A stretch of 64,000 bases of DNA from Octopus sinensis. Taxonomy: Eukaryota. The notes under the pieces were generated by a model. That model was not told the DNA's origin. It searched no databases and saw nothing but the letters and a program-made list of their open reading frames with translations. Of this stretch, positions 3,205 through 52,250 are shown one piece after another; position 1 is the first letter of the stretch; each line of letters opens with the position of its first letter. The stretch lies in NCBI RefSeq assembly GCF_006345805.1, contig NC_042999.1, positions 12,152,001 to 12,216,000 of the forward strand, written 5' to 3'. Made by a program: the position numbers and the translations under genes.

Positions 3205-4350
3205 CTTTAAAAAGACAAAAAAAAAAAACTCAAAAAAAAGTTAAAGCATTTCTCTAACCACATTCAGCTACCCAGCACTCCCAGGTCAAAAGCATCATCA
3301 TTTAACACCTGCTTTCCATATGGGCCTGGGTTAGATGGCTTGACAGGAGCTGGTAAAGCCAGGAGTCATACCAGGCTCCGTGATCTGTTTTAATAACGTT
3401 TCTACAGCTGGATGCCCTTCCTAACACCAACCACTTTACAGAGTGCTCCACTGGGTGCTTTTTACATGCCACCACTACCACTGCCTTTTATGCAACACCA
3501 ACACAGAAAATTCTTAGATGGCACTGGCACTTTTTATGTGGCACCATCACCAGTGCTTTTTACGTGGCACATTGCATATTATTTCAGAAGCTTTAATATT
3601 TTCGAAATCTATAATTCTCAGATCACTTTTCCATCATTAAATCATTGTTAGTTCTGAAATAAATTACTTTATAATTAAGATGTATAAACATGTTGGTCTT
3701 ATAAATTGTTACGATATGAATGAGAGAGAAAATTCAATTATTTATTAATAGGAGAGATTTAAAAAAATAAAAATATTGATATACAGGAAAAGTTGGTAGG
3801 CGTGGCACTGGTATCAGCTATGTGGTTGAGAGGCTTGTTTCTGGACCATGTAGTCTCAGGTTCAGTTCCACTGTATGGCAGTTTGAGCAAGCGTCTTCTC
3901 TTACAACCCTCAGCCACCTGTAAGTGGATTTGATAGACAAACTGTAAGAAGCTCATTGTGTGTGTGTGTGTCTCTCTCTTTGTCTTGACATGTGATGGTT
4001 GTAAATGAGCATCACCTACATACAGGCAACATTATTCATTTTCAGTCTTCCATGGAAATATGTCTTACCAAAGGTAAATATTACCTTGTTTGGAAACACA
4101 AGTGTTAGTGGCAGGAAAGACATCTGGTCATAGAAAATCTGCCTCTACAAATTCTGTGTGACCCATACAAGCATGGAAAAGTGGACATTGAACAATGTTG
4201 ATATGAAAAAAAGGAGTAATTTGAAGAAGATATTCACAAAGAGCCCATATTACCCTGATATTGTGGGTTAAGACAAAAGGTAGGTAGCAATGAATTAATT
4301 AAATAATGACAAGTTCTCTAAAAATATTTGAGCTAAAATGTTCTACTTAC

Positions 4351-34400: not shown

Positions 34401-35140
34401 CATAGTTAAGAGTCACTCATAAAATAAGCAAACAGTTTGAGAGGGACACAGGGACTGCTATGATTAAAAACTCTCCAAGTTTCTAACAGCCACAATTCAA
34501 GACCTAAAACTAATAATACTACAAAGCCTCATCAAAGGAATATATTTTATCATCATCAGTTTTCCATCCTAGCATGGATTGGAGCCTTTGACAGGAGTCA
34601 AACAAAAGACTGTGTGAAGTTCATTTCCCCCACCATGTTCCACTATACGACACCTAGGTCAAGGATCGTCTGCTATATTCCTTGGCCATCCAAAGCCTTG
34701 TGAGTGGATCTGATGGACAGAAACCGACAGTAACCGAGCTCTCTAAGATTTTTATGTTGTTACCATTGAGTGAGAGTATAAAATAAATAGTATCTTCAAT
34801 ATGTAATCAAAATAACACAAGAAGTATTGCAGATATTCAATGATATATTTCACATTTTATGTACAGGATATGATAAAAATAATGCAAATATACACACAGT
34901 ATGTATGTGTGTGTGTATATTCAAATGTCATTTAGCAATTCAATTCCAAAGTGTTTATCTGAAACTATAAAAGGAAATCTTTTTGGAATGTCATTAAAAA
35001 AATGAAGGATAACATCCTGTTGCTATGACTTAGCTGTCTTATGAACTTCAATTTTTACAGAAATAAAAAAAAAAAAAGATCATTCCTTATTGTTTTGTTA
35101 ACAACATTGGGTGAAAAGAAATATAAATGTGCAAGAAGTT

Positions 35141-37552
35141 TTACTTCTTCCGACCACCTCGTTCTTTGAGTTGCAAATTGATGCTTGCTCCATGGGGAAG
35201 ATTGTAAAAGGCTAAAGTATTGGAATCTTTGACAAAGATACCTTCATACTGTAATTTCTGCTTACCAGCAGGAATACTGAGTGCTTCGTTAAGTTTCGCT
35301 TTAATTACAGACACTGAATCAGTAAGTGGTAAAGTAAAGTTGAGCACTTGACCATTGAGGTTCCATTCAGGTTTATCTGGAACGTTTGGCACCAAAACCT
35401 TGACCAAAATCGGGTTCTTGTGTGTTCGCAAATATTCTTCTTCTGAAACGAGAGATTCTTCAGTTTTCTGTCGCTTTGATTGGGTTGGTTGATCATCTTC
35501 CTTTGGTGGTGGGGGAGGAACACTGAAATCTGATGTTGAAACTGGCAGTTGTGGCACTGGTGGTTGTGGGGGACGCTGTGAAATGCCCAAGACATTTCCA
35601 AGTGCAGTTGGTGGTGGTCGAGGTGGAAGAATCACCATACTCTGGGGCACGGGAGGACGGGGCATTGGTGGCATGGGAGGTGCCGGTTGTACAGGAGGTG
35701 GGGGTGGGGGCTGTATCTTCATAATATTTGGAGTCATAGTATTGGTAGGCATAGGTGCTGGTGGCATTGGTTTGGGAGGTATTGGGTGTTGCATTGGTGG
35801 ATGTATTGGTTTTGATGGTTTGGGCATGGCTGGACCAATTTTCTCCTTCTCTTCATCAGGTACTAAACCCTTCACTTTATGAATAACAGCAATCTGTTCT
35901 TCAATGGTGATATTCTCACGAGCTTTCTGTGTTACTTTCTCCATCGAAGCTGTGTGTCCATCCCAGACAACTTTCTTTTCTTTTTTCTCTTCTTCCCCTA
36001 TCTTTTTACCAATCTGAGTTTCTTCAGCACCAATACCGAAAATATCAGTACGGCGTTCAGCCAGTTGTCTCAAACTGCTGCCAATGGCCAAACCAGGAGC
36101 ATAAACTTCTTCTTGCTCTCGCTTTTCAGCAATTGAACGATTGCGTTCTTCAATCCACTTGCGGTCAAGCAAACCAATTCGCATGTGTTCAGGTACTTTA
36201 TGAGTAGGAATTTTTTCACCAGTGATCGGAGACACCATGAAAGAATCAGGATTGGGCTCTGTGCTGATTGTTCGGGCCTTAGGGTTATAATCCTTACGTA
36301 CGATAACTTGATCAGGGGTTGGTGGTAAAGGAGGTGGAGGCTGGGGAATATCACTGGGTGGCGGCGGTGGAGGTTGAGGAGTGATCACCTTGTCTATTTT
36401 TCTTTCTTCGTCGATTTCATCCTCATCTGAACCTTCGTCCATGTCCAGTACTTGGTTATTGTCAGAAGGTGGAGGCGGACGGAGCTGCGGAGGTATCGGT
36501 AGTGAAGGAGGAATAATAGAAGAATGCTTGTTCTTATCAACAAGAACATCTTTTTGTGTTTTACCACCTTTGTCTAGAATGATGTCATCGCCATCCTCTT
36601 CATCTGATTCCACTTCCATTGCAACGTCGTTGGTGTTCTCTCCTTTTTCGTAACGCTCCTGTTGGATGACCCGAGCACCGACTTCTTCCGGGGTTGTCGG
36701 AGAAGGCAGATTGCCCACCTCACTCGCTTGGAAATCAACTGTTTCCACCACAACGAAATCGTGCCAATCAATCTGAGCATAAGCGATACGTTCTTTTTCC
36801 AGGGCATCTTCCTCTTTCCGTCGCTCCCGTTCTTGGTATTTTGCCCACTCAACACGATATTTAACTTGCTCTAAAATGTGTTTACTGACTTGAGACTCTT
36901 TCTTCAGCTTGTTGCTAAGGTCTTTAGGGGGAATTAAAATTTTGGTATATTGTTCAACTAGTTTAGTAAAATAATTGAAAAGACTATGCTGCGGCCTGAG
37001 GAAGTCGAATTGGTAATTCCTCTGTTCCCGATTCATTAAGTTTGTTAAAAACTGACGACCGTTACGGGCCACAAACTGAGCAGTTAACTTGACAACATCC
37101 AGATCAAAAGCCGAGATCGATGGAGGATCAGCAGTAAATTCAAACTCAGCAGGCGGTTCATTAGGAATAATTGGTTCTATATTTTTTATAGGCTCGCTCA
37201 TAGGTTTCAAGGCCATCGCCGCAGTAATAATCTTACTAACAATTGGCTCTTGGCCCTTGCCATCTTTAAATTCTTTAACTTTGTGCTGATAGTATGCATG
37301 GTAGGGATCGGCAGGATTCAAAAAGTTAAACTTTGGGTTATTTACCTCGTTTTGTCTGATCCGACTTTCGAATTCGGGTCCGTTTCGGGCCACAAAACTG
37401 GCGGTTTTGTCAACAATGTTCCTCACTTCTGGCGGAGGATAAATAATACCGATTACAGGACGTGTATAAGTTTTTTCTTCTTCAGATTTCTCTTCCGGTC
37501 CAGTTACTGATTCTGGGAGCAGCAGGCCTTCGGCTTCCACGGCTGGAGGCAT
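35141..37552 (-). CDS. SF3A1: Splicing factor 3A subunit 1 (SAP114/Prp21), single-exon CDS, 803 aa
   Basis: Two SURP domains (IIYPPPEVRNIVDKTASFVARNGPEFE; DVVKLTAQFVARNGRQFL), PRP21-like IDWHDFVVVETVDF, Pro-rich region, C-terminal ubiquitin-like domain ending QLKERGGRKK*. Confidence 0.98.
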   Translation of the reverse strand: MPPAVEAEGLLLPESVTGPEEKSEEEKTYTRPVIGIIYPPPEVRNIVDKTASFVARNGPEFESRIRQNEVNNPKFNFLNPADPYHAYYQHKVKEFKDGKGQEPIVSKIITAAMALKPMSEPIKNIEPIIPNEPPAEFEFTADPPSISAFDLDVVKLTAQFVARNGRQFLTNLMNREQRNYQFDFLRPQHSLFNYFTKLVEQYTKILIPPKDLSNKLKKESQVSKHILEQVKYRVEWAKYQERERRKEEDALEKERIAYAQIDWHDFVVVETVDFQASEVGNLPSPTTPEEVGARVIQQERYEKGENTNDVAMEVESDEEDGDDIILDKGGKTQKDVLVDKNKHSSIIPPSLPIPPQLRPPPPSDNNQVLDMDEGSDEDEIDEERKIDKVITPQPPPPPPSDIPQPPPPLPPTPDQVIVRKDYNPKARTISTEPNPDSFMVSPITGEKIPTHKVPEHMRIGLLDRKWIEERNRSIAEKREQEEVYAPGLAIGSSLRQLAERRTDIFGIGAEETQIGKKIGEEEKKEKKVVWDGHTASMEKVTQKARENITIEEQIAVIHKVKGLVPDEEKEKIGPAMPKPSKPIHPPMQHPIPPKPMPPAPMPTNTMTPNIMKIQPPPPPPVQPAPPMPPMPRPPVPQSMVILPPRPPPTALGNVLGISQRPPQPPVPQLPVSTSDFSVPPPPPKEDDQPTQSKRQKTEESLVSEEEYLRTHKNPILVKVLVPNVPDKPEWNLNGQVLNFTLPLTDSVSVIKAKLNEALSIPAGKQKLQYEGIFVKDSNTLAFYNLPHGASINLQLKERGGRKK

Positions 37553-37752
37553 TTTGGTAACAAAACACTAAATAAGAAAACAATTTCCTATTTTATTCGA
37601 CCAACACCAAACAAAATGGCGAAACTGGTTTTTAAGAGCAGCACAATTACCTCCCTTGTATAGGTTACGGTTTCCTGTAGACGGCAGCCTATATACTTCC
37701 GGTGAGCCCGTGTTCTTCCAACTGTAAACCCCGAATCACTCTCTTTCCCATC
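37553..37752. promoter_or_regulatory. Compact bidirectional promoter SF3A1 / RPL13A with TCT(TOP) initiator
   Basis: ctctctttccc at 37739-37749 just before the RPL13A ATG, ETS-type acttccgg at 37695-37702, tatata at 37690-37695, YY1-type caaaatggcg at 37612-37621. The two ATGs are 200 bp apart and divergent. Confidence 0.75.
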
Positions 37753-37770
37753 ATGGTGTTCCAACGTCAG
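37753..37770 (+). CDS. RPL13A: RPL13A exon 1 (MVFQRQ)
   Basis: TOP tract, then ATG GTG TTC CAA CGT CAG|gtttgt. Phase 0 fits exon 2; a very short first coding exon is also the vertebrate RPL13A arrangement. Confidence 0.8.
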
Positions 37771-38559
37771 GTTTGTCTTTCAACTGCTCAATATTTACTC
37801 GTAGGATTCACAAATTACAGACTATTTTCATCTTAAAATCTCTATGATTAGCTCAGATTCGTTATACAGAATCATTTAAGACGGTCACATTACGAAATCT
37901 CTTTTGCTAATTCCAGTAAATCTTGCTTTAAACGGCTCCACTTGGCCGCAGCATGACAAGTCTTCTTTTAAAATGGCTGAAATCCACGTGAACAGAAATC
38001 TCTTCGCTTTTTCCCCCTTTTTTTTTCCTTCATGAACTCTGTATTGTTTCTGAATTACTAAAGTGCTTTCGTCTCTCTATACTGAGATCATTCTCGTTTT
38101 TGTCACTTTTCCCTTATAGCTATTTTATAAAACAGTTAATAGGATTTTCAGAATTGCTCCATGTGCTTCACTTCTACAGAATCCGAATTCTTATTTCTGC
38201 TTTATTGGGCTTAGTTTTCAACATTTTCAGACACATAATTAAAGGATGCTTATTCTAAAAAGAAGCAGAAAGGATTATATTTTGTATAATATTAATAGAA
38301 ATCCTATCACGCCCGGCAATTAATGAACCTCGTCGAGGCCTTAAGACCCTTAAATGTGACTTTTAAACACATTTATATTTTTTACGAATTGTTAATTTCG
38401 TTTCCACTGATATGGATTATCACAATTTTCGCGAAATAGGATGTTTTTTTTTTTTTTTTGGTCATGGTTTGTCAATCTAAGCTTTCCTTCATCGTAGAAA
38501 AAAGTCTTTAAATACTTGTGGTTGCATCTTGACTTACAGATATATTTTTCTTTCCTCAG

Positions 38560-38632
38560 CCCATCGTAATCGATGCCAGTGGGCATCTTTTGGGGCGATT
38601 GTCTGCAGTCGTAGCCAAAAGTCTCTTGCAAG
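38560..38632 (+). CDS. RPL13A: RPL13A exon 2
   Basis: tttcctcag|PIVIDASGHLLGRLSAVVAKSLLQ G|gtgagt, 73 nt. Confidence 0.97.
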
Positions 38633-39055
38633 GTGAGTAGAAGGCTGTGTTCCTAATAATTTTTTACTTTAAAATGTGATATTTTCCTTTCTAAGGATAA
38701 TATCCCCCAATACCTTTTGTTACAATGACTTGATTCAAGTCAAATTACTGAAAATTAAAAGGCCGAGTCCATTAAATCACGGGTTTTCGGGTTGCGTTTC
38801 TGAAAACTCTTGCCGTAATGTGGATTTTCGTTATGCGAAACGCATTTTCCATTGACTTTCATATTTGGAGGCAGGTGGGTTTCACATTAGCGGCATTTTC
38901 AGGAGAGCGGTGTTTGTATCCGTAATGCGGGGGATGAATGGGGAGGGATTTATTTCGTTTTAGTAATGTATTTTTTTTTTTGGAAACATCCAATTGTAAT
39001 TTTTGATATCCTGCGAGAATTAGTTTTTCTAATTTTATCTACTTGGATATTTTAG

Positions 39056-39121
39056 GACAAAGAATGGTAATTGTCCGATGTGAAGGTATCAATATTTCAG
39101 GCCATTTCCACAGAAATAAAA
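39056..39121 (+). CDS. RPL13A: RPL13A exon 3
   Basis: ttttag|[22 protein letters not shown]|gtaagt, 66 nt. Confidence 0.97.
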
Positions 39122-40048
39122 GTAAGTATTTTATTAATTTCGTACAATTAATTATGCATTTTATTTACTAACGTTGTTCCAGGATACGTCCTCACTGATA
39201 TTTCTTGTGGGATTTCGAGTCATTCAATATCGAACCCCCGTTCCTCGCCCATTGACCCAGCCATAACAAGAATTGCCACGACTCTGGCACTATGGAAACT
39301 TCGCAAATACCATTTTGTTTCTGTTCTTCATCCTTATTCAGTCGATCATTAATGAAGAGGGTTGTATTTGCCACAGAAGTCTAAGACCTTGTGGTTTAAT
39401 GGTCCGTTATTTACTTGATGCTAGGATGTGAAATATCTTTTGTCATCTCTATAAATTTCAAGATAGTTTTTAGGTTTTGCTGTTGGTTTCATCTTACATA
39501 AATTCCAACAAAATGAGCCCCCTCCCCAATGACACGGGCGTCTCCTCTCTTTACCACATATGAATGACTGGTCACCTAATTATTTTTTATCCAGACAGAT
39601 AATGTATTTGTTGAAATAGATTTTTTTCCCCTGTTATGATCTTCTGTAATAGGAGTTGATGTAGATTCGGAATGATTGATAGCTCTAGCCACGTTTTACT
39701 GAGTGAGTAAAAGAGATATTGAGAGCTCACATACTAAGCTTGATGGCAGGCAATGAGTAAAGGAACAGTGTATGCAGAAAGAATCAAGACAGGAGGATGA
39801 GGGAGTAAATGAGTAGTTATGAGAAATTTATTTTAAGATGATGGTTTTCTTTTGAAAACCGGTATTTCATTTTGTAAAAGTTGAATTATAATTGTATGTT
39901 GTGGTTTTAAGAGTATAATTCCAAAGTTACCCTTATGACAGATAACACTAATGAAATACATGTTGTACCCCCCCCCCCCACGTTAATAATACAAGTTTGT
40001 TAAAAGCTTGCCCTCAAGTAATTTCATTGTCACTTTTTTTTTTTTCAG

Positions 40049-40150
40049 TGAAGTATTTAGATTACCTTCGAAAAAGATGTAATGTGAATCCCAGAAGAGG
40101 ACCCTTCCATTTCAGGGCCCCCAGCAAAATTTTCTTTAGGACAGTCAGAG
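40049..40150 (+). CDS. RPL13A: RPL13A exon 4
   Basis: ttttcag|[35 protein letters not shown]|gtaaga, 102 nt. Confidence 0.97.
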
Positions 40151-40206
40151 GTAAGATTTGTTATGGAATATTCTCAATAAGTTTGGCAAAGTTGTTCTGG
40201 CCTGCT

Positions 40207-40277
40207 GTCTGTGATGACCGTACACCGAATTGAATGCAATCAATGAAAGTTCCAATTCATGCACTTCCACCTGAGAC
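40207..40277 (+). ncRNA. SNORD33: Box C/D snoRNA, SNORD33/U33-like copy A (variant guide)
   Basis: gtc-t-GTGATGA (40211)...catgcacttccac-CTGA (40271)-gac, with an outer ggcct/aggcc stem. The D-box guide resembles U33 (catgcactaccat-ctga) and the snoRNA sits in RPL13A intron 4, the vertebrate U33 host intron. Confidence 0.8.
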
Positions 40278-41847
40278 TATAAAGGCCATTGTTCTATTCT
40301 TGTTTTCTGCTCAACTGCTATTTGGTGTAAATGCTACAAAGAAGAGTATCCAAAGTTAATCAAATGTTCTATGATTGTGTAAATGCCTCCATGCAATTCA
40401 GATAGTTTTCGTATGTTTCAAACAAAACTTTTCCCTGTTGGACAGTTACGAGACATTTCCTTCAGTCTGTTGGAAATAGACCCTATTTCTCTCTGCTATT
40501 TAAATAAGGATGATGTGATATCTTAGATAACCTCTAGAACCAAGTGTGGTCTCAGGCAGGTGATATGTGAAGGGGTTAGCAGTGATTAGCGTGTCTGAGC
40601 TGGAAGCTTTAGAAATAGGGATATGCTTTGCAAGAATTATTAAATATCCCAAAGAATTTCATGATCTGCTTTGTACACCAGTCCTTTTCCAGCAGAGCAT
40701 AAGGTTTTTTTTTCATACTTTATATTGCATTCCATAACAGAACAAAATATGTTCTGTTCCCAATTTTACCTGTGGATTGTACACAAAGGGTTGCATAATT
40801 AACTAATGGATTCTAGCCACTTTGATGATTCTATATCGATATGGATGTAGTTTTATAACCATCTGTTAAATAAACAAAATTCCAAACGTCTGGAAATTTC
40901 AGATTACTTCTATATTCAGTTGAAACATTAACCATTGTTAGAAGCTTCAGTATTTGATGATAATTAGGTAGCACAATTCATTGTCGTCACTTTAGCATCC
41001 ATTTTCCCATGCTCCTCACATGTATTGAACAGAATTTATTGAGGCAAATTTTCTACAACTGGGTATCCTTACTGTTGCCAAGTATGGCATTATTTACCTG
41101 TGGCAATTTAACACATAATGATGAAAAGGCAAGGAAACAGTGGCATGCACACACACACCCACACCGTCTGGTTGGCTTCTTTGTTTCCATCTACCAAATC
41201 CACTCAGAAAGTTTTGATTATTCAGACACTTTGGTAGAGGACATCTGTCCAGGGTGCCATGCATTGGGACTGAACCTGGAGTCATGCTATTTGGAAGCAA
41301 ACTTCTTACCATGCAGCCATACTAATTCTCATGAAATTTCACCAGTCAGTACTGACACTATTTTTAATCAGGTTGACCATGACAGGATTTGTGCTCCAAA
41401 CCTAGTTGAAATAGTGTTTTCTGTCAAACACTCTAATGCAGCGTTTCTCAACTGAGGTTCCCTGGAACCCTAGGGTTCTGCAGAACACTGCTCTAATGGC
41501 TTTATGAATTAACCACCTTAAACTCTGCTGATCAAGCATCAATTAATGTTCGTTTCCCAAGCTGACAGGATTTGGTTCCACTGTCAGCTTTGGCGTGGTT
41601 TTCATGGCTGACACATGTTACAGTCTGTTCCACCAGAACTGGTGAGTTTGCCAAGTGGGGTGGCTGGGAAAGCCTCCATCGACTATGTAAGGGGTAGTAT
41701 TTGTGGAGCGAGGGACCTCTAAATGCTAAAGTTCATTTGCCATGTTCTGAATGGCTTTAACATTTTCTTTTTCTTTTGGCAATGCCCTGCTGATTGCTCT
41801 CTTACACTGGCTTCTTTTGTGAAGTAATGCTTTTTTCGGCCCCTTAT

Positions 41848-41913
41848 GTCTATGATGATTTTTCACTGTCATGAAAGTAATGATTATTACACACATGCAC
41901 TACCAACTGAGAC
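41848..41913 (+). ncRNA. SNORD33: Box C/D snoRNA, SNORD33/U33-like copy B (canonical guide)
   Basis: gtc-t-ATGATGA (41852)...ATGA(D')...aatgatt(C')...catgcactaccaa-CTGA (41907)-gac. The guide pairs with conserved 18S GUGGUGGUGCAUG, with the +5 A opposite the U methylated by U33/snR55. Confidence 0.88.
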
Positions 41914-42697
41914 TGGCTGAAATACATTTTACAAATGCCAAAGATGTTTGAGACCAGCTTTGTGTTGCTGCTACATTTATTTCTTTTGACTGTTTTTGTT
42001 AGTCATTGGTTTATCATTATAGTTTGTCTGTTTTTCCATGCTGGCATGGGTTGGATGGTTTGACTGAGGTCTGGAGAGCCAGTGGCTGTACCAGGCTCCA
42101 TTCTGATCTGGCAGTATTTCTACAGCTGGATGTCCTTTCTAATGCCAACTACTCCAAAAGTCTAGTGGGTGCTTTTTATGTGCCACTGGAATGGGAGCCA
42201 GCCAGTCAGGTGGGCCTGGCATTGATTATGTTTCGATAGTGCTTATTATGTGCCACTGGCATGGGAGCCAGTCAGGCGGATCTGGCGTCAACTACATTCG
42301 GATGGTTCTTTTCACATGCAGCTGTCATGGATTGATTTTAGCTAGAAAGTGATAAAACAGGCACTGAGAGAATGAGTTGCTCTTAGCTTTTACATTTCTT
42401 CCATTATATAACCTTTCACTATATTGAAATAGGCTGCTTTCATTTCAATTAATTTTGAAAATCATAAAGAAATTAGTAATATAGCTTTGTCATTAAACTG
42501 AAATTTGGATGGCATTTTACTTTAAACAGTTTATATAAGAACTAAGAGGCTGTCTCAAGCAGATTAGCAAACAACAAATAGAAGTAGTGTGGCTTTATGA
42601 TTGAGTAATGTGTCTGTGTGTGCTGCAGTTTGGTGCGCTGTTATCTAGAGGGATAGAGTATAAGTTCTCTGTAATTATCAAGGTGTTTTGGCCTGTT

Positions 42698-42767
42698 GTC
42701 TATGATGATCATTCACCAAAATGAAGTATTTAATGATTGTACACAGACATGCACTTCCACCTGAGAC
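42698..42767 (+). ncRNA. SNORD33: Box C/D snoRNA, SNORD33/U33-like copy C (variant guide)
   Basis: gtc-t-ATGATGA (42702)...catgcacttccac-CTGA (42761)-gac, with an outer ggcctg/caggcc stem. Confidence 0.83.
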
Positions 42768-43709
42768 TCAGGCCTAAAACCTTTTTTTTTTTTTTTTTTA
42801 GTCTTTGTTACAATATATAAATTTTGTGATTTATTTAGTATAGTTGTAAAAGTGTGAGAGCAGTTTTGTTTCTCCTTAAAAAGTGGGTATATTTGTTCAG
42901 CTGGTTGTGTTGAGGAAAGGAGTGTATTACTCAGGTTTTAAAATCTGTTTCTGTGATGTAATACAATAAACTCTTTTGAGACCCTCCCTGGTTCTATAAG
43001 CTGTTGGATTTAAGGTGATATAAAAGTTGTAAAACATCAGGGTTTCATGTTTATCTTCTGAAAACTAAGAGACAAAAGTTATTTTACTACATTCTTCATT
43101 TTCAAAATTAAATAAGCAGAACTGTATTTTGATGGAAATATGGTAAGAAAAGAGTGAATATTGTGGAGTATTTCTGCTACCATCTTGTCTTTTTATCCAT
43201 TTGGGCAGTATGGCTTGAGACAGATTTATTTGCTATGTCTGTCAAGACAATCAAGTGTTGCGGCTCTCATTTCTTGGAGAAAATAAACAAATTTGATGCC
43301 TGGATGAGATTGGATGATAATGTTTCTCCACTTGACTGTTGAGAGGAAATTGGCGAGGGGCTGCACAACAACTCTGAGGTACCAGGGCCATTATAGTAGA
43401 GACAGTCCAGGGGGACTTTCTCTTGCTGGATGTATGCAGCAGCACCATCTTAGATGAGAACAATTCGTAATTGTGGACTTCACCTGACCTTTATGGTGTC
43501 ACCAATTGTTGAGGGTTGGAGTATTTTATGGCCCTTATCTTCAGGACCAATCTTAGATATTTTAAGGATGTGCTTTTCCAATTAGAGATACTTTGTGTGT
43601 GATCTGCAGTTCCCCACTCTGTAAATTTATGGGGAAAAACGTGAACAATGTTACTGCACTTTTCAGTTATGGAATGTATTATCAGAATTAAAAAAAAAAA
43701 AAGCTTGGC

Positions 43710-43895
43710 ATTGCCCGGTCCTCGTGCCGGTGGCATGTAAAAGCACCCACTACACTCTTGGAGTGGTTGGCGTTAGGAAGGGCATCCAGCTGTAGAAACT
43801 CTGCCTGGTGCAGCCATTTGGCTCGCCAGTCCTCAGTCAAACTGTCCAACCCATGCCAGCATGGAAAACGGACGTCAAACGATAATGATGATGAT
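43710..43895 (+). mobile_element. RTE-tailed retroposon copy in RPL13A intron 4
   Basis: ttggcgttaggaagggcatccagctgtagaaac...ccaacccatgccagcatggaaaacggacgtcaaacgataatgatgatga. Further partial copies near 303-470, 3295-3570, 19370-19520, 28660-28735, 34170-34352, 42030-42330, 47800-47905 and 55865-56040. Confidence 0.8.
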
Positions 43896-44042
43896 TATGA
43901 GATCTGCCTGAGCAAAAATTAAAATTTGCAAAAGAATGTCTAATGCCGTTTGGAGTGTTGATAAATAAGAGTGATGAGATGTGGTGAAATTTGTTTTATA
44001 TATTAGTATTGCTTGTATCATTGTACTTTTGTTTCTCTTTAG

Positions 44043-44188
44043 GTATGCTTCCTCATAAAATTAAGCGTGGAAAAGATGCTCTTGGCCGACTGAAGGCATT
44101 TGAGGGAATCCCTCCTCAGTACAACAAAAAGAAGCGAATGATTGTTCCAGCAGCTCTCCGAATTATTCGTTTAAAACCTGGCCGAAAG
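44043..44188 (+). CDS. RPL13A: RPL13A exon 5
   Basis: ctctttag|[49 protein letters not shown]|gtaaat, 146 nt. Confidence 0.97.
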
Positions 44189-45083
44189 GTAAATATAGAA
44201 TGTTTTGTTGTTGGTCAGATCAGCCTCTTGCAGTTTCTCCTGTGCATTCAACACTGTCATCACTCGAGTTAGAACCGACGACCTTTTGGACACAAAGCAA
44301 ATCTTTAGAATTATAGCAAACGACTGACTCGGCTTCCTTCTCTGGTATGGTATTGAGTACTCTGGCTTTTGGCAGTCAATGCTACACACTCTTTTCGGTC
44401 ATTTAACTGTGGCCATGCTGGAATACTGCCTTTAGCCTAACAAATCAACCCCAGGACTTATTCTTTGTAAGCCTAGTACTTATTCTGCCAGTCTCTTTTG
44501 TTGGACTGCTAAGTTACATCAGTTTTCAGGTGATGGTGGCACAACAAACACAGAAGCACAAATACATATATGTATGTAATTATGTGCATACATATGATAT
44601 GCTTCTTTCAGTTTCCATCTACCAAATCCACTCACAGGCCTTTGGTTGGCCTGGGGCTGAGTCTGGGACCGTGTGGTTGGGAAGCAAACTTTGTGCGTGG
44701 TTTAAAATACAGAAATTGTTGACTTGGATTCATTAAGTTTTGTTTAATTCTGTTTGAAACGAAAGAGACTTACGGATGTATATTTGTGATTTCCTCTATG
44801 GAAATAAAATATATTTTCTGAAAAGCCCTGCTTTTAATGTAGCATTACTTTAACCCTTTTGTTACAAAACTTCTACGGAAGTACAAGGATTTTGAAGATG
44901 ATAATGAATTTATTAACATAATTTATCATGCTGGGACCATAAGATAGTGTAAAATTTTGATGGTGGGGTTTTTGGTGATTTTAAAATGGAAATTTCTATA
45001 TTATAGAACCTGAAGGCAATTTCAGAAGGGTTAATTGCTTTTCCACAATTGATCCACTCTTATGAACTCAGTATATCAGCTGT

Positions 45084-45149
45084 GTTAATGATGACTTTAA
45101 TTACCTACATTGCTTGATTCTTCTATGAGAATTAACAAAATCTGACAAC
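45084..45149 (+). ncRNA. SNORD34: Box C/D snoRNA, SNORD34/U34-like copy A
   Basis: gtt-a-ATGATGA (45088), D' guide ttacctacattg-c-TTGA complementary to conserved 28S CAAUGUAGGUAA (U34/snR62 site), CTGA at 45142, then caac. Outer tcagctg/cagctga stem. Confidence 0.88.
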
Positions 45150-45946
45150 TCAGCTGATTTACAAGTGTTCTTATGACTTCATCACTTTTTCTGTGTTGGT
45201 ATTTCCATTTACTCTCGGTCTCGGTCATTGCCAGGACTCTTGATATGGGCAATGTCTTAGTTTCAAAGAGTATTTATCAGTGTCCACTGATTACATGTTT
45301 TCAGCTTATGGTCTCAATATACAGTTTGTATAAACTTCACATTGCTTTTTCAAATTTATTTTGAACCCTTTTAATACTAGCCTGTCTGAATTCCCGTGTA
45401 TAGAACACAAATTTGCAAACATTTTCTGCCAATTCTAAAATAAAAAAGTTGAAGGATTCTATGGGGTGCTTAGACCAGAATTCTCCTCTGTTTGGTTGTG
45501 TCCCTTGTCTTGACATCCTGTGGTAGTTGTGGGCAACTGTTGCTCTCAGATATGCAATGTTGTTTGCCTGGAAAATGGTTGGCCCTGCTTTAGAACCATT
45601 AAGAGCTTATGAAAAGAAGGGCATTTGGTTGTAGATCTACCATAACAAATTCTGTCTAACCCATGCGACCATGGGAATGTGGATATTTCTTCGTAGCAGC
45701 ATTACCATCGTCTTCATTTCATGTTCAAGTCGCTGAACTGAAATAATTTCATCTTTCTTTCTAATTACATTTTGTAATGACAATAATTTCATCTTATTAA
45801 TAAGATCGATGAGAGCAAGTTAACGACGAAGTACTGAGTTACCTCTCCTACCATTTCATTTGCTGCTGGTTTTCTCTATTTAGATACAGCACATTGCATA
45901 TTTCAGTTAGTAAATCTCACTAGTTTGGTCTCAATATATCAGCTGT

Positions 45947-46013
45947 GTTAATGATGACTTTAATTACCTACATTGCTTGATTCTTCTATGAGAATTAATC
46001 AGAATCTGATAAC
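45947..46013 (+). ncRNA. SNORD34: Box C/D snoRNA, SNORD34/U34-like copy B
   Basis: Near-identical to copy A: ATGATGA at 45951, guide 45964-45975, TTGA, CTGA at 46006. Confidence 0.88.
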
Positions 46014-46681
46014 TCGGCTGATTTATAAGAGCTCTGTATTGGCAGGTCTTTTTTACTCTGAAACAGTTTAATCTCAACTTTTTGACTGACCTTTCAATTG
46101 GTCTCCTGTTTGAAGGTCTCTAATTATTTGGCATAAGTCCTTCTGAATTTAACTTGTGACAATGCAATAATTAGGATGTCTCATGAGGATTTAAAATGTG
46201 TGAGTGAATGAGTACAAAACATGGTTAATATCAGCCAGAAGTTATAAATTGTGATGATTATTCTCATGTTAAAACGTAATTTCTTGGTTTTCTTTGTTAA
46301 AATTATTAACAGCCACTAAACATCTCAGTTTAATGACAAGTTTTGATGCTTTTACCAAGTACAAAGAGAATCTTAAATTGGTTTTTTAACCCATTTGTTA
46401 CCATATTTCTGTTGGGATACATTGTCTTTGTTTCAGTTACATTTGAAAAAGAATATTGTAAAACTTGCAACGTAAATGAACAGATTTTTTTAGCACGAAG
46501 TTTGTACCTCAGATTTAATTTGTAAATGTGCTCCTTGGGGATAACTTTCCAAGAAGTTCTTTACTATATAATATTTAAGTATCGCTCTATAAAAATAGTT
46601 TCTTGGGAGCAGAAAGGCATTTGGCTGTTAAAAATCTACTTTGTTGTATAAATGATTGCCCTTTCTGGTGGAGTTAGCTGT

Positions 46682-46750
46682 GTCGATGATGATTATAACA
46701 TTTACCTACATTGTTTGACGATTGATGTAAAGAAACCAAACACTGATGAC
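46682..46750 (+). ncRNA. SNORD34: Box C/D snoRNA, SNORD34/U34-like copy C (more diverged)
   Basis: gtc-g-ATGATGA (46686), ttacctacattgt-TTGA (46702-46718), CTGA at 46743, then tgac. Only the boxes, the D' guide and the outer agctg/cagct stem are shared with copies A and B. Confidence 0.88.
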
Positions 46751-46914
46751 TCAGCTGATTCTGTCCTTGTTGCAGTTTCCTCCCTTGCCATCCTATTGTT
46801 GCTGTTTACTGCAACTGTCCAAATGTGAACCAATGTCACATCTTGGTTGCTTTCGTTTATTTATTTTTACAAGGAATTTATTAAATCTGACATTTTGAAA
46901 ATTCTATTTCACAG

Positions 46915-47037
46915 TACTGCGATTTGAATCGATTGGCTCATGAAGTTGGCTGGAAATACCAACCTGTCATTGCCAGTTTAGAAGCTAAAAGAAAGGCGAA
47001 ATCTAGTATCTTTGTTGGAAAAGCAAGATCTGATGCA
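46915..47037 (+). CDS. RPL13A: RPL13A exon 6
   Basis: tttcacag|YCDLNRLAHEVGWKYQPVIASLEAKRKAKSSIFVGKARSDA|gtaagt, 123 nt. Confidence 0.97.
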
Positions 47038-47126
47038 GTAAGTTTTTCATTTCTTAATATGTTATTTTGTTCCAAACTTTTTTGTGCTATTGGTATAATA
47101 TTTTCCTTTGTTTTCTTCATTTACAG

Positions 47127-47210
47127 GCCTTGAAAAGAAAAGCTAAAGAGACTGTGAGCAAAAAGATTCGAAGTTATGAGAAAGTAATCAAAGGTTATGG
47201 TTACAGATAG
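47127..47210 (+). CDS. RPL13A: RPL13A exon 7 (last coding exon)
   Basis: ttacag|ALKRKAKETVSKKIRSYEKVIKGYGYR*. The seven exons sum to 612 nt = 203 aa + stop. Confidence 0.95.
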   Translation, partial: ALKRKAKETVSKKIRSYEKVIKGYGYR

Positions 47211-47230
47211 ATTCATTGCTTGGAGAGTGT

Positions 47231-47236
47231 AATAAA
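47231..47236 (+). terminator. Polyadenylation signal of RPL13A
   Basis: AATAAA 20 nt after the stop codon. Confidence 0.7.
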
Positions 47237-48274
47237 GTTATATTGGCTAAGATAAGATTTTGTCTGATGTGTTTCATTATACAACCGAGTGGTCACTTGT
47301 GCATACTTTAGCTCTGCAAACATCGAATAAAATGAATACAAGCTATGTAATTAGCAGAGTCTACAGCATATAAAGAGTGACTGTTATCTTGTGTTTTCAG
47401 TTGGTGAATATCTTTGAACATCCATTTTTCCATGGATCAGACAGTTTATGGGAGACATGCGTAAATAACCTTTTGATCTGCAACACAAACTACAGGCAGC
47501 CAGCCAGCCACCTGCTAGCCTACCAATCAGGTGTCTGCTAGCTAGATCAATTATATTCTCACCAAACAGTGTGATATGTGGTTGCTCCTAAATTCAAAGA
47601 CCCTCCCTGGTGAATGATGTACCCCTCAGCAGAGATTAGTCATTAGCAGTCTTTCATCTCCAAGCCTTTTTTGCAGAATCATTACATGCAAGTACAGCAT
47701 CAACCATCAAACCCCCAGCCCTCCCTCCAACGTATAATTTACTTTAAAAAGAAATACTTTATAAGGGAAAAACGTGAGAAAAAAAAGAAAAATTAATAAT
47801 CTAATTTCTGATGAAGCCTTCTGGCTTCACAGACCCCAGTAGAACCGTCCAACCCATGCTAGCATGGAAAACTGACGCTAAACGATGATGATGATGATGA
47901 TGAAAAACATGTGCCTTCTCGCACATAAACACAGTATTCACACATATACAAACACGCGCAGATGCAATTATTGAAGTACTAAATGGCACGTCAAATGATA
48001 TTTAATCGTGTGGAACATTTTGCATGCATATCAATATTCTAAAGTTGGACATACTATCCCTTATCCGAAAGCTGCTTCAGACAATTAGGAAGGGTTCCCG
48101 ACTCGTTGCACCGTCTGCTTTCAATCTTGGATTGTGATTCGGCTCAGCCCAAACTCTCTCAGTTTTTGTCTGCTGTTGCCTACTCCTACAAGGATTGCAC
48201 CTGTTTTTTGTTCCTGATTTAACCCCGATTTGTCCTAGAGCCCATAGAAGATTGTTTTTAGTCAACCATCCATC

Positions 48275-49426
48275 ATGTCAGCTACCTACGCATCGAATCT
48301 GAGATCTGCAAGTAGGGCTTCTCATCAAGATGATGGTCCTACCAATAGTCAGCTCAACGAACAGTTGCTGTTGCTCAAACAAGAGGTTGAGCACCTAAAG
48401 TCTGTTGTTGCTCTCTTACTGAATAAACAGTCTCCTGTTGACGCAGAGTCACCCTTGATTTCTTCCCTGGAGACGTCCAAACCGAGGCGGCCAAAGAAGG
48501 CGAAGGAACCGGCGGTCGTTTCTGCACATGATCGTTCCTGTGCGGATTCTTCCTCATCTGCCTTTTCAGTCCCGGAGGTTCCCCAACCTAGTTTGAGGGG
48601 CGTAGACTCAAACCCACCTGAAGACTGTTGTTCTCCCCAAAAGAAGAAACGTAGTCAAAACTCCAGAGGGGCAGATTTGGCTATGAAACCTGATCACGAT
48701 AAAATCTGTTTGGATTCTCCTTCACTTGTCCTTCCCATTAATGCCATTGCTCAACCAATTCTGAACGATCTCGATGTGGGTTCATCTGGGGAGTGGTGCT
48801 CCCCCAAACCGAAGAAGAGGCAGTGCAGTTCCAAACCAGGCGGGAAAATTATGACCACTAAATCCATTCCGATCGACCCCACAATCCGACATAAGTCCAA
48901 TGGCTATGAAACCACCCTTTCGAAATCCTCCAATGAAGAATCGAATACCGCAGCTCATAGAGAACTTTTTGCCCACTCAAGATCGGCAATAATATATGGC
49001 AATGCTGAATCCACCTGTGATACAGGCATAAACCGCCTAAAAGATGACATTAATTTTGTTTCCGTTTTGGTTGGAAAATTGTTCTCTGTGAACGAAAATG
49101 TCAGTGTTCTTAAGGTCGCTCGGCTAGGAAGATTCCAAGCGAACCCAACCGCAGATACTAGACCACGCCCAATAAGGGTAATCTTTTCTTCTGATCGGGA
49201 GGCTTCAGTCTTTCTGAACAGAGCTCAGACGCATGCCTGGGAGGACCCCAATATGGGTTTTCGCGAGGAATACTCACTAAGAGAGAGAATTCGCTGGAGG
49301 AACCTGATATCCGAGCTAAAGATGAGGAAACAAATGGGAGAGAAGGGTTTACGAATCCAAGGTGGACAGATAATCAAGTCCTACCTCTGGTCCCATGCTG
49401 TAGTGCTGACAGGGAAAGTGATGTGA
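48275..49426 (+). CDS. LINE ORF1 protein, 383 aa, intact
   Basis: N-terminal coiled-coil (QLNEQLLLLKQEVEHLKSVV), low-complexity linker, C-terminal CR1-ORF1-like block (AIIYGNAES...VARLGRF...RPRPIRVIF...ELKMRKQMGEKGLRI). Confidence 0.85.
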   Translation: MSATYASNLRSASRASHQDDGPTNSQLNEQLLLLKQEVEHLKSVVALLLNKQSPVDAESPLISSLETSKPRRPKKAKEPAVVSAHDRSCADSSSSAFSVPEVPQPSLRGVDSNPPEDCCSPQKKKRSQNSRGADLAMKPDHDKICLDSPSLVLPINAIAQPILNDLDVGSSGEWCSPKPKKRQCSSKPGGKIMTTKSIPIDPTIRHKSNGYETTLSKSSNEESNTAAHRELFAHSRSAIIYGNAESTCDTGINRLKDDINFVSVLVGKLFSVNENVSVLKVARLGRFQANPTADTRPRPIRVIFSSDREASVFLNRAQTHAWEDPNMGFREEYSLRERIRWRNLISELKMRKQMGEKGLRIQGGQIIKSYLWSHAVVLTGKVM

Positions 49427-52250
49427 GGGCAAATCGAAGTGAAGTTGATACCCCCGTCAACGATGCTATCTCTGATGCCCTTTATTCTGCTTGTTCCCCA
49501 ACTCCCGCCCCTCAGACTTCGCAGCTCAGCATCGTCTACACCAACTCGTGCTCCTTATTCCCAAAGTTCAGTGAACTATTTACACTGGCCCTACGCGACT
49601 CCCCTGATGTGATAGCTATCACCGAGACTTGGCTGACTCCAGCAGTAAAGGACTCAGAGATCCACCTGCAGGGCTACGTCCTTTTCAGATGTGACAGAGG
49701 AAAAAGGCGAGGTGGAGGTGTTGCTGTGTATGTTAAGTCTGAGCACAAACCGTCCTGCGGTATTCTACCCACAAATGCTCAACCTACAACCAAATTCGAT
49801 GCTGTCTATTGCAAGCTGAGCCTATCTGAGTTTTGCCTGCCCGTGTTGGCTGTCTACAGGACGATGCTCATCTACTCGAAGCGATAAGATTCGTTTCAGC
49901 TTCGCATGACTGCTTGGTACTAGGCGACTTCAACGCTCCCACGATCGATTGGCCCGCATCAATTTGTACAACATCTTCCCGGTTCGGCCAGGCCCTTCTT
50001 GACGTGGCTGAAGATTGTTTTCTATCGCAACATGTTGAATATCCGACAAGGCATCGGTCTGGGCAGCAGCCATCTATGCTAGATCTGGTATTCTCCTGCT
50101 ATCCAAGATCAGTGTCAGACGTATCGGTGTGCGCCCCTCTTGCCAAGAGTGATCATGCGGTCCTGAAGTTCGTCATGCACACAACTTTTTCCACGCCCAC
50201 GATTACTTCGCTGCCACGTAGAGTCTTCTCTGCAATTAATCTTGAAATTCTAACCGAGGCTTCCGCGCTTCTGGACTGGCGTTCCCTGATGACGTCCTCA
50301 GTTGACGAACTATGGTCGTCCCTCAAAGCATATGTAATCTGTTTGACTGACCAGGCAGTTCCCGTTGGACTTCCCAAGAGGAAGAAACACAAGCCCTGGG
50401 TGACGAAGAAGGTTAAACGAGAACGTCGACTCAGAGATATTGCTTGGGCTGAATTCAAAAATCTGGATTCGACTGCAGCTTTTGAGGTGTACAAAACTCA
50501 ACGAGACCGAGCCGTGAAAATTGAAAAGAAAGAACGCTTCAGTTATGAATACAAAATCGCGGCAAATGCCAGTAGCAATCCAAAAACCTTCTTTGCCCAT
50601 GTCCAGCGGAATTCCCGCTTGAACAACCAGATTGCAACGTTGGTAGACTCAACAGGCGTATCGATTGAGGACCCTTATCAACAGAATCAATTATTTGCCA
50701 AGGCTTTTTCAACTATTTTCAAACAAGATGATGGTCGTGAACCCCCTCCATTTGATAGATCGGTACCTCCAATGCTTCGATTGATCATCACGTGGGACCA
50801 AGTCAAACGTGTTATTCAAGGCCTCGATGTCAACAAGGGTCACGGCCCTGACGGCATACACCCACGGGTTATCAAAGCGTTGGCTCCGGTCATCTGCGAG
50901 CCCTTAACACGACTATTCAATATGTCATTGGCGACGGGTGTTATACCTGCAGACTGGAGAACAGCGATAATCTGCCCAATTTTCAAGAAAGGGAGCCGCG
51001 AAGACCCGCTTAACTACCGACCGGTTTCCCTTACATCAATAATCAGCAAGATGTTCGAAACCATCCTTAAGAAAAGTATGATGCTCCACCTCCTAAACAC
51101 AGCCTCGATCACTGATTCCCAACACGGCTTCGTGCCGAAGAGATCATGCTTGTCCAACTTACTAGTAATGGAAGAATTGGTGACGCGCATCCTCGATGAT
51201 AGTGATGCTGTTGACATCGTTTTATTGGACTTTGCCAAAGCTTTTGACTCGGTAAACCACCGCCTACTACTTGTCAAGCTTCAAGCATATAGTTTCCATC
51301 CGGATATTGTACGATGGGTTGGTGCCTTCCTCTCAGATCGCTCTTTCCAAGTTCAAGTTAATGGTTCGCGGTCCGACGTCTCCAGTGCGAGCAGTGGCGT
51401 GCCTCAAGGTTCAGTGCTTGGGCCCTTGTTGTTCTTAGTCTTCATAAATGACTTGCCCGACGACCTCACGCAACACACCCTTCTATTTGCCGACGATATC
51501 AAACTGGTCGCTCCTCGCGGTAGTATAGAGGATCTTCGTCGATGCCTCCACCAAATTTGGAAGTGGTCTAACGATTGGGACCTGTGTCTGAACGTGTCAA
51601 AGTGCTGTCGGCTCTACTCCTGCAACTCAACTTGATTTTGAGCCGATCAGGTAAAGGACCTGGGTATCTTGGTGGATTCCTCCTTTTCGCCTTCGGCCCA
51701 GTGCGTCCATGCTGCCAACAAAGCGCGCGGAATTCTGTTTTTGATTCGATGGTCATTCGGAATGCTCACAGCAGCCATATTCCTGCCACTCTATGTCACG
51801 CTGGTGAGACCCATATTGGAGTATGGGATTCAAGCCTCTTCTCCTTATCTCCTCAAAGACATACAGCACCTCGAAAGAGTCCAGAGGCTGGCTACCCGCA
51901 TGGTTCATGGTCTCAAAAATTTGTCCTACGAAGAAAGGCTGAGGACGCTCGACCTTTGTTCTCTTGAAAAACGCCGCCGCCGTGGTGATCTCATTCTCGC
52001 CCACAACATCATGAGCAGGAAGTGTAACCTCTCGAAAGAGCTGTTCTTCACTCCTGCTCCGGAGCGTCGGCTGCGGGGTCATTCCGAAAAGCTCTACCTG
52101 CGACGATTTCATCTCAATCGAAGGAGAGGAGCTTTCTCCGTCCGGGTTGCGGATCCGTGGAACAAGCTGCCAGACGAGATGGTGAAGATGCCGACGACCG
52201 CTTTGTTCAAAGCCTCCCTGGACCTCAAGTGGCCTGAACTCTTTACATGA
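49423..52250 (+). pseudogene. LINE ORF2 (APE + RT) broken by two short frameshifting deletions
   Basis: YTNSCSL, DVIAITETWL, DRGKRRGGGVAVYV, frameshift near 49860, LGDFNAPTIDW, LDLVF, SDH, GHGPDGI, NYRPVSLTS, LDFAKAFDSV, PQGSVLGPLLF, FADD, frameshift near 51610-51660, VRPILEY...WNKLP. Confidence 0.9.

Follow-up and report, generated by a model that had tools for sequence, protein, structure and literature searches.

How does an intron that carries three small nucleolar RNAs (snoRNAs) release all of them? The question is raised by the ribosomal protein gene RPL13A (uL13) of Octopus sinensis, which lies within a stretch of 64,000 nt on contig NC_042999.1 (assembly GCF_006345805.1, positions 12,152,001 to 12,216,000, forward strand), called the window below; positions are those of the window. 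Two neighbouring introns of this gene contain six box C/D units, namely three SNORD33-like units (U33-1 to U33-3) in intron 4 and three SNORD34 units (U34-1 to U34-3) in intron 5. We consider it reasonably probable that all six units are true box C/D snoRNA genes dependent on their host, arranged as two same-family intronic clusters and separated from one another endonucleolytically.

Six box C/D units in two introns of RPL13A

The host gene and the six units are located as follows.

37753..47210, plus strand: RPL13A/uL13 coding region, 7 exons from the spliced translation, all introns GT-AG
37753-37770, 38560-38632, 39056-39121, 40049-40150, 44043-44188, 46915-47037, 47127-47210, plus strand: RPL13A exons, from tblastn and exact spliced mapping
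40151-44042, plus strand: RPL13A intron 4, 3892 nt, phase 1, after ...TVR (next residue G); houses the three SNORD33-like units
44189-46914, plus strand: RPL13A intron 5, 2726 nt, phase 0, after ...KPGRK; houses the three SNORD34 units
40204-40280, plus strand: U33-1, RF00133 31.3 bits; model R1 36.2 bits, E 4e-6; C box 40211-40217 (GUGAUGA), D box 40271-40274
41845-41916, plus strand: U33-2, RF00133 36.3 bits; R1 51.4 bits, E 7.5e-10; C box 41852-41858, D box 41907-41910
42695-42770, plus strand: U33-3, RF00133 34.6 bits; R1 39.9 bits, E 5e-7; C box 42702-42708, D box 42761-42764
45080-45153, plus strand: U34-1, RF00147 42.6 bits; C box 45088-45094, D box 45142-45145
45944-46016, plus strand: U34-2, RF00147 39.6 bits; repeat family D1; C box 45951-45957, D box 46006-46009
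46678-46754, plus strand: U34-3, RF00147 42.7 bits; C box 46686-46692, D box 46743-46746

At curated thresholds, an Rfam scan of the whole window returned three SNORD34 matches on the plus strand (RF00147, gathering score 38 bits) and no other family. A permissive scan of 34000-52000 (E<=10) added three matches to the SNORD33/SNORD32/Z195 family (RF00133, gathering score 44 bits), all of them below the gathering score; this threshold is passed by the RPL13A-hosted copies of Lingula, Gigantopelta, Owenia, Biomphalaria, Tachypleus, and a snake (45-86 bits). A covariance model (R1) was made from 16 RPL13A-hosted SNORD33-family sequences above the Rfam threshold, taken from the brachiopod, the gastropods, the annelid, the horseshoe crab, and the snake, with cephalopods excluded. 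With a search space of 131 kb, R1 recognized all three U33 units, and across the 64-kb window no other position scored better than E 0.05. U33-2 is a clear member of the SNORD33 family, and U33-1 and U33-3 are divergent paralogues. Within the other trio, the cores of U34-1 and U34-2 are 97% identical, with a likeness that reaches 25 nt upstream, while U34-3 is a divergent paralogue (70-74% identical to U34-1 and U34-2).

The spliced RPL13A product of 203 amino acids (aa) is identical to the O. vulgaris/O. sinensis entry, 99% identical to that of O. bimaculoides, and matches Pfam Ribosomal_L13 (E 2.6e-20). In intron 4 the units are separated by spacers of 1577 and 791 nt, and in intron 5 by spacers of 805 and 676 nt, with copies of dispersed repeat families among the units of both introns. 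The C box of U33-1 lies 60 nt from the 5' splice site, and the D boxes of U33-3 and U34-3 lie 1278 and 168 nt, respectively, from the 3' splice sites.

An earlier note on this DNA had placed six C/D units on the plus strand, three in each of introns 4 and 5 of RPL13A and about 0.7-1.6 kb apart. The Rfam and R1 matches, the intact boxes and stems, the 3 + 3 arrangement with spacers of 0.68-1.58 kb, and the exact spliced translation with GT-AG borders all agree with that description. The Rfam search that it proposed succeeded for the SNORD34 units (at or above 38 bits) and fell short for the SNORD33-like ones, which R1 nevertheless recognized (E 4e-6 to 7.5e-10). It had set the units among short interspersed nuclear elements (SINEs), and dispersed repeats, putatively SINEs, do stand between them. 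The guides complementary to ribosomal RNA (rRNA) that it attributed to the units were recovered for U33-2 and for U34-1, U34-2, and U34-3, but those of U33-1 and U33-3 face the target base with a U-U mismatch at the nucleotide that determines methylation.

No further snoRNA was found in RPL13A introns 1-3 and 6 or in the rest of the window (Rfam at E<=10 over 34000-52000 and at E<=0.05 over the whole window), and our own scan of the RPL13A gene for the combination of C box, D box, and flanking stem gave no additional C/D unit. Neither SNORD35 nor a SNORD32-type guide for Gm1328 was detectable in the octopus RPL13A gene. Retroposition was considered as a source of the copies and rejected, as they have no A-tails and the copies within one intron all share the same orientation. 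A run of 18 T residues at 42785-42802, followed by AG, lies directly 3' of U33-3 and has no counterpart at the orthologous place in O. bimaculoides; as a retroposon tail it is on the wrong strand, and it was rejected as such on both grounds.

Guides and rRNA targets

Guide pairing was examined on a set of 120 eukaryotic rDNA stretches obtained by a pattern search of metagenome contigs. In one of these (L128), Rfam confirms small-subunit (SSU), 5.8S, and large-subunit (LSU) rRNA, and the two target sites lie within SSU and LSU, respectively.

U34-1, U34-2, and U34-3 share the D' guide UUACCUACAUUG (before UUGA in U34-1), which is invariant in 11/11 cephalopod copies. This guide pairs over 12-13 bp with A[C/U]AAUGUAGGUAA of LSU rRNA, with the target at position 5, a site that we take to be that of human 28S Um2824. 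The D guide of U33-2, CAUGCACUACCA, pairs with 18S UGGUGGUGCAUG over 12 nt (one G-U), and the U equivalent to human 18S U1326 stands opposite the fifth nucleotide upstream of box D; the known target of SNORD33 is 18S Um1326 (PMC3511168).

U33-1, U33-2, and U33-3 all have the SNORD33 register for Um1326 (CAUGCAC at positions 7-13), only U33-2 having A at position 5, and none of the three has the SNORD32 register for Gm1328. In U33-1 and U33-3 the D guide is CAUGCACUUCCAC (CAUGCACUUCCA), in which U replaces A at position 5 in both Octopus species. The base facing this position is U in 120/120 18S sequences, which gives a U-U mismatch for both units. Because of this mismatch and the "fifth nucleotide" rule, U33-1 and U33-3 are predicted from their guides to bind the 18S site yet not to methylate the U. 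Alternative rRNA targets for the variant guide were sought among the 120 rDNAs and rejected, since this guide paired recurrently only with the canonical 18S site, mismatch included. In the same set, no consistent rRNA partner emerged for the second (D or D') guide region of any of the six units.

The position-5 U copies of O. bimaculoides lie at L001 5748-5824 and 8215-8290. D guides that depart from the canonical one at position 5 alone also occur elsewhere, with U in the intron-6 copy of Gigantopelta (L004 17012-17086) and C in the intron-5 copy of Lingula (L006 4522-4601).

Boxes and extended terminal stems

All six units keep an intact C box (GUGAUGA or AUGAUGA) and a CUGA D box, and measure 58-64 nt from the start of the C box to the end of the D box. 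The 18-nt flanks of each unit pair as a duplex of -11.2 to -20.9 kcal/mol (z -2.5 to -6.2), as compared with -4.45 +/- 2.67 kcal/mol at 4077 random positions in introns 4 and 5. The values are -13.6 (z -3.4), -11.2, and -18.5 kcal/mol (z -5.3) for U33-1 to U33-3, and -18.2 (z -5.1), -15.9, and -20.9 kcal/mol (z -6.2) for U34-1 to U34-3. These stems exceed by far the usual 4-5 bp. The external stem of U33-1 is GGCCUG.../...AGGCC, that of U33-3 is an 11-bp helix of UUUUGGCCUG..GUC/GAC.CAGGCCUAAAA, and U34-1 has the extended stem AUCAGCUGUGUU/AACUCAGCUGAU.

When the 12-bp U34 stem was aligned over 11 cephalopod copies, 83% of cells were paired and both sides had changed in 8 of the 12 pairs. Sliding the partner by 1-3 columns reduced pairing to 21-55%, and 0/500 shuffles matched the observed pairing or covariation score. 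RNAalifold gave no structure for 13 U34 sequences, those of the brachiopod and the horseshoe crab included, because the 3' ends were misaligned; the stem statistics are cephalopod-only. The U33 stem differs in sequence by genus while its complementarity is kept, being GGCC...GUC in Octopus, GGCCAGUU/GACUGGUC in Argonauta, and UGAAGUGUU/AACACUUCA in cuttlefish.

Conservation among cephalopods

The corresponding introns of O. bimaculoides are collinear with the window and hold a one-to-one orthologue for 6/6 units. Identity between the two Octopus species is 94.3% for the units, as against 84.7% for the remaining intron (Fisher p 2e-11), and the mean of the six units is higher than that of six random 90-nt windows (bootstrap P 1e-4). 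Identity to the orthologue is 94% for U33-1, 96.6% for U34-2, and 98.9% for U34-3, the last exceeding every background 90-nt window. In comparisons with Argonauta and cuttlefish, nothing but the snoRNA units and exon 5 can be aligned, indicating that the units are the sole constrained intronic elements and that no cryptic exon has been conserved.

Among the Octopus U33 paralogues identity is 66-76%, but it reaches 90-95% between orthologues, and the U33 trio must therefore be much older than the split between the Octopus species. The four U33 copies of Argonauta are 95-100% identical to each other, with U33-2 as the nearest Octopus copy (81-83%), which indicates separate amplification or homogenization. 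In cuttlefish, as in the gastropod Biomphalaria, U33 and U34 units are mixed within the same intron, unlike the single-family clusters of octopods.

RPL13A snoRNAs across Bilateria

We compared the RPL13A loci of 9 other species, with exons mapped exactly or by tblastn. The intron contents are as follows.

O. bimaculoides: intron 4, three U33; intron 5, three U34
Argonauta: intron 4, four U33; intron 5, three U34
Cuttlefish: intron 4, U33 and U34; intron 5, U34 and two U33 (L003 7140-7213, 7619-7687, 8540-8615, 10246-10321, 10864-10936)
Gigantopelta (gastropod): intron 3, two U34; intron 5, eight U33; intron 6, one divergent U33
Biomphalaria (gastropod): intron 3, one U34; intron 5, one U34 and three U33 (L010 3129-3202, 12805-14337)
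Mercenaria mercenaria (clam): intron 3, 18 Rfam-detected U33-family copies, including 14.5 tandem 182-nt units
Lingula (brachiopod): introns 1-5, one unit each
Owenia fusiformis (annelid): introns 2, 3, 4, and 6, nearly identical U33; intron 5, two U34-like units
Tachypleus (horseshoe crab): intron 1, U33; intron 3, U34
Snake (Ahaetulla prasina): three introns, one unit each

Both families are found in RPL13A of the horseshoe crab, the brachiopod, the annelid, the two gastropods, the cephalopods, and the snake, while the clam gene has the SNORD33 family only. The copies of all 10 species stand on the sense strand of the host. Because it is common to chelicerates, lophotrochozoans, and vertebrates, the linkage of U33 and U34 to RPL13A is older than the protostome/deuterostome split, as the earlier note had proposed. 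The same note saw the copies as amplified in the octopus lineage; multiple copies are indeed present here, but this view was too narrow, since cuttlefish, Argonauta, Gigantopelta (8), Biomphalaria (4), and Mercenaria (18) have them too. Both the number of copies and their placement are fluid, and introns with multiple copies, differing in number and in the intron occupied, occur across molluscs.

The intron numbers shared with vertebrates correspond in one case out of two. Exon lengths are 18/73/66/102/146/123/84 in the molluscs and brachiopod mapped exactly, and 15/73/66/102/86/60/123/87 in the snake. The snake SNORD34 lies in a 203-nt intron 5 (L009 9044-9246) that splits the 146-nt exon into 86 + 60 and is missing from octopus. 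Octopus intron 5 is therefore the counterpart of vertebrate intron 6, and it is by coincidence that both are numbered "intron 5"; the extra intron reflects either a gain on the lineage to the snake or a loss in protostomes. Octopus intron 4, in contrast, is vertebrate intron 4 in position, a position common to all lophotrochozoans examined and the snake. Common ancestry of the intron-4 placement cannot be claimed, as the units are mobile elsewhere.

The Mercenaria array in intron 3 (L005 10591-13257) consists of 14.5 x 182 nt with 92% matches and a U33-family snoRNA in each unit. Interspersed among its 18 detected copies are 6 with the C box ACGAUGA in place of AUGAUGA, and each spacer carries GTAAAAGT ... 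TTAGCAG, in donor-then-acceptor order. Intron 6 of the same gene (L005 17716-17782, 18254-18314, 21609-21677) gave sub-threshold matches to SNORD24 (36.5 and 39.4 bits; gathering score 41) and SNORD50 (33.1 bits; gathering score 42), which suggests that the clam RPL13A hosts more snoRNA families, unseen in the octopus gene. The nearly identical U33 copies of Owenia (L008 4658-4738, 4939-5020, 5394-5474, 8334-8414) are distributed over four introns, indicating copying or gene conversion between introns and not tandem duplication inside one.

Release of the clustered snoRNAs

When two snoRNAs share an intron, exonucleolytic trimming halts at the small nucleolar ribonucleoproteins (snoRNPs) and leaves a snoRNA-ended long non-coding RNA (lncRNA), not free inner RNAs (PMC4234469, PMC4233238). 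The earlier note's argument that trimming alone cannot free several snoRNAs from one intron thus agrees with the papers on such RNAs (sno-lncRNAs). Since trimming halts at the outer snoRNPs, release of an inner unit needs at least one cut in each spacer. We favour endonucleolytic separation because the one canonical U33 occupies the middle of its trio and because all three U34 units are intact.

In the explanation that we favour, the two clusters would have arisen by local duplication from one ancestral U33 and one ancestral U34 unit, and interspersed repeats would have been inserted later among the copies, driving them apart. Each unit would be a self-contained assembly module, with C and D boxes clamped by a 9-12-bp extended terminal stem formed from its flanks. 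Such a stem would let the snoRNP assemble anywhere in a long intron, without the fixed branch-point distance of typical vertebrate intronic snoRNAs. This would be the splicing-independent mode of assembly that Hirose et al. (2003; listed in PMC3089462) reportedly described. The D' guide of the U34 units would direct 2'-O-methylation of the LSU U in CAAU*GUAGGUAA (equivalent to human 28S Um2824), and the D guide of U33-2 that of the SSU U in UGGU*GGUGCAUG (equivalent to human 18S Um1326). All six units would be transcribed within the RPL13A pre-mRNA, and splicing and debranching would be followed by exonuclease trimming down to the outermost snoRNPs, while at least one endonucleolytic cut per spacer would free the inner units. 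A share of the molecules probably persists as snoRNA-ended long RNAs. That every copy is expressed, how the units are released, and that U33-1 and U33-3 do not methylate are inferences.

Several observations weigh against this explanation. The U33-like units (31.3-36.3 bits) miss the Rfam curated threshold of 44, and between the two Octopus species only U34-2 and U34-3 individually exceed the background windows, U33-2 (0.885) being at the 47th percentile. The guide pairing was checked on 120 eukaryotic rDNAs other than that of octopus, and the stable small RNA expected from each copy is a prediction from the genomic sequence. No recognition feature for an endonuclease or RNase III was identifiable in the octopus sequence, and we know of no animal enzyme established for the cut between units. 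In addition, there may be more U33 or U34 genes elsewhere in the genome, in which case the argument for obligatory release of the middle copy falls.

The alternative that survives best, although we judge it unlikely, is that exonucleases act by themselves: trimming of the introns would stop at the outermost snoRNPs, and most of the product would survive as sno-lncRNAs of ~2.57 kb (40204-42770) and ~1.68 kb (45080-46754) with the middle units trapped, so that the arrays would be genes for lncRNAs no less than for snoRNAs. The stated prerequisite of a sno-lncRNA is that an intron holds two snoRNAs, and the mouse Rpl13a gene itself yields one, of the SNORD33-SNORD34 type, upon skipping of the intervening exon (PMC4234469, PMC4233238). 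The outer units U33-3, U34-1, and U34-3 also own the strongest flank stems. On the other hand, the spacer sequence is unconserved even between octopods, so that any lncRNA body would be unconstrained, and the sole canonical U33 guide, located in the middle unit, would be wasted. It would also be hard to explain the 14.5 near-identical units of Mercenaria at 182-nt spacing if just the end units counted.

A bolder version of our favoured explanation, which we offer as rather doubtful, holds that molluscs have a regular, undescribed pathway for cutting between intronic units, needed because the only target-matched U33 is in the middle of the trio, and that U33-1 and U33-3 bind the same 18S site without methylating it, as competitors or chaperones that tune the extent of methylation at U1326. 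If this were true, U33-1 and U33-3 would not be dying copies, and the variants of Gigantopelta (U) and Lingula (C) would be parallel cases.

Dying copies are what a further alternative would make of them, with one functional snoRNA per intron and the rest neutral duplicates becoming pseudogenes. U33-1 and U33-3 are mismatched at the position that determines methylation and have the lowest scores with both models, the D' box of U33-3 is not kept in O. bimaculoides, some Mercenaria units have the mutated C box, and conservation between the Octopus species is mostly inside the background range unit by unit. We nevertheless find decay improbable. Perfect C and D boxes and strong stems are retained in 6/6 units of both Octopus species despite the low identity among U33 paralogues, which indicates long coexistence; moreover, the position-5 U is common to both variant copies in both species, and the U34 guides are invariant over all the cephalopod copies.

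It is more improbable again that alternative or recursive splicing, through unannotated exons or zero-length ratchet sites, gives each snoRNA an intron of its own, with the aberrant mRNAs passing to nonsense-mediated decay (NMD). Human hosts of multiple snoRNAs are extensively alternatively spliced with products that are NMD targets (PMC4233238), and alternative splicing is described for the cluster hosts of Neurospora (PMC2780460). However, AGGTRAG ratchet sites number 0 in introns 4 and 5, and a crude consensus scan found a single strong donor, in intron 4, and a single strong acceptor in each of introns 4 and 5, none paired as a candidate exon. The spacers share no conserved block with Argonauta or cuttlefish, and the annotated isoforms of O. 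bimaculoides and O. vulgaris vary at the 5' end only.

Many nematode intronic small RNAs reportedly have promoters of their own, and the distance of the octopus units from the splice sites, as much as 1278 nt in the case of the 3' site, gives no sign of branch-point dependence, yet transcription of each unit from its own promoter is scarcely credible here, given that every copy in ten species follows the host strand and that similarity among paralogues and genera stops within ~25 nt upstream with no shared or conserved upstream element, although the absence of a motif is not proof that there is no promoter.

The RPL13A locus and its surroundings

The repeats that stand between the units are found over much of the window. 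One interspersed family, recognized by CCATGCTGGCATGGGTTGGA, has 12 copies on both strands, 3 of them within introns 4 and 5, and a second is recognized by GTTTCCATCTACCAAATCCACTCA.

331, 2200, 24661, 28690, 34311, 34564, 42036, 43845, 45655, 47848, 55866, 59917, both strands: repeat with CCATGCTGGCATGGGTTGGA
32121, 41183, 44611: second repeat, with GTTTCCATCTACCAAATCCACTCA

The first coding exon of an SF3A1-like gene (37346-37552, minus strand; Pfam Surp, E 1.4e-9) is arranged head-to-head with RPL13A. The start codons of the two genes are ~200 nt apart, and the pyrimidine tract CTCTCTTTCCC precedes the RPL13A start. A Surp/PRP21/ubiquitin neighbour is likewise located upstream of RPL13A in O. 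bimaculoides, Argonauta, and cuttlefish. A 116-aa RPL13A-like protein of O. vulgaris (P0122), encoded on a different chromosome-scale contig, begins at the Met that opens exon 5 and has 2 substitutions; the annotated gene is probably a pseudogene or a partial retrocopy.

Comparison with known systems

The octopus locus alone is ordinary, as its snoRNA genes, though genuine, are arranged in a way already documented for plants and flies, and its interest rests mainly on the molluscan comparative series and on the unexplained position-5 variants. This series, with 1 snoRNA per intron (brachiopod), 3-4 (cephalopods), and 14.5 in tandem (clam), could be used to study the release of multiple snoRNAs, and also to ask whether sno-lncRNAs are a general by-product. 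The co-varying extended stems point to an assembly independent of branch-point distance, which may permit such arrays. RPL13A houses U33 and U34 across Bilateria while the intron and the copy number vary, which makes it a within-gene example of "constrained drift" (Hoeppner & Poole) and a counter-example to the rapid loss of host association. We found no paper on molluscan snoRNA organization or on a bilaterian RPL13A linkage in the literature searched, which is not proof of absence, and a search for the Drosophila U1356/G1358 snoRNAs gave only unrelated RPL13A papers.

Vertebrate RPL13A (SNORD32A/33/34/35A; PMC4234469; snake L009) resembles the octopus gene in the host itself, the two families, the guide sequences, and six intron positions. 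It differs in having one snoRNA per intron, and the snake SNORD34 lies in an extra intron. The prerequisite of sno-lncRNAs, two or more snoRNAs in one excised intron (Yin et al., 2012; Zhang et al., 2014, PMC4234469), is present constitutively in the same host gene of octopus. The mouse Rpl13a sno-lncRNA depends on exon skipping and contains two different snoRNAs, whereas in octopus the arrangement is built-in, with three paralogues per intron, and any sno-lncRNA is putative.

The polycistronic clusters of yeast and plants, processed with the RNase III Rnt1p and with Rat1p, are like those of octopus in that one precursor holds several snoRNAs needing endonucleolytic separation, each with a terminal stem (Qu et al., 1999, cited in PMC2780460). 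Those precursors, however, are for the most part transcribed independently and outside introns, and their spacers are short.

The closest likeness in arrangement is to the intronic snoRNA gene clusters described in rice (Liang et al., 2002) and Drosophila melanogaster (Huang et al., 2005), which, as cited in PMC2780460 and PMC3089462, also have several sense-oriented snoRNA genes per spliceosomal intron of a protein-coding host, against the vertebrate rule of one per intron. The Drosophila clusters are mainly H/ACA, and silkworm has one snoRNA per intron (PMC3089462). The octopus clusters, by contrast, are box C/D, are made of copies of one family, have repeat-filled spacers of 0.7-1.6 kb, and belong to a mollusc. 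Several snoRNAs per intron were thus already known from rice and Drosophila, and octopus adds a box C/D, same-family, molluscan case in the ancestral host.

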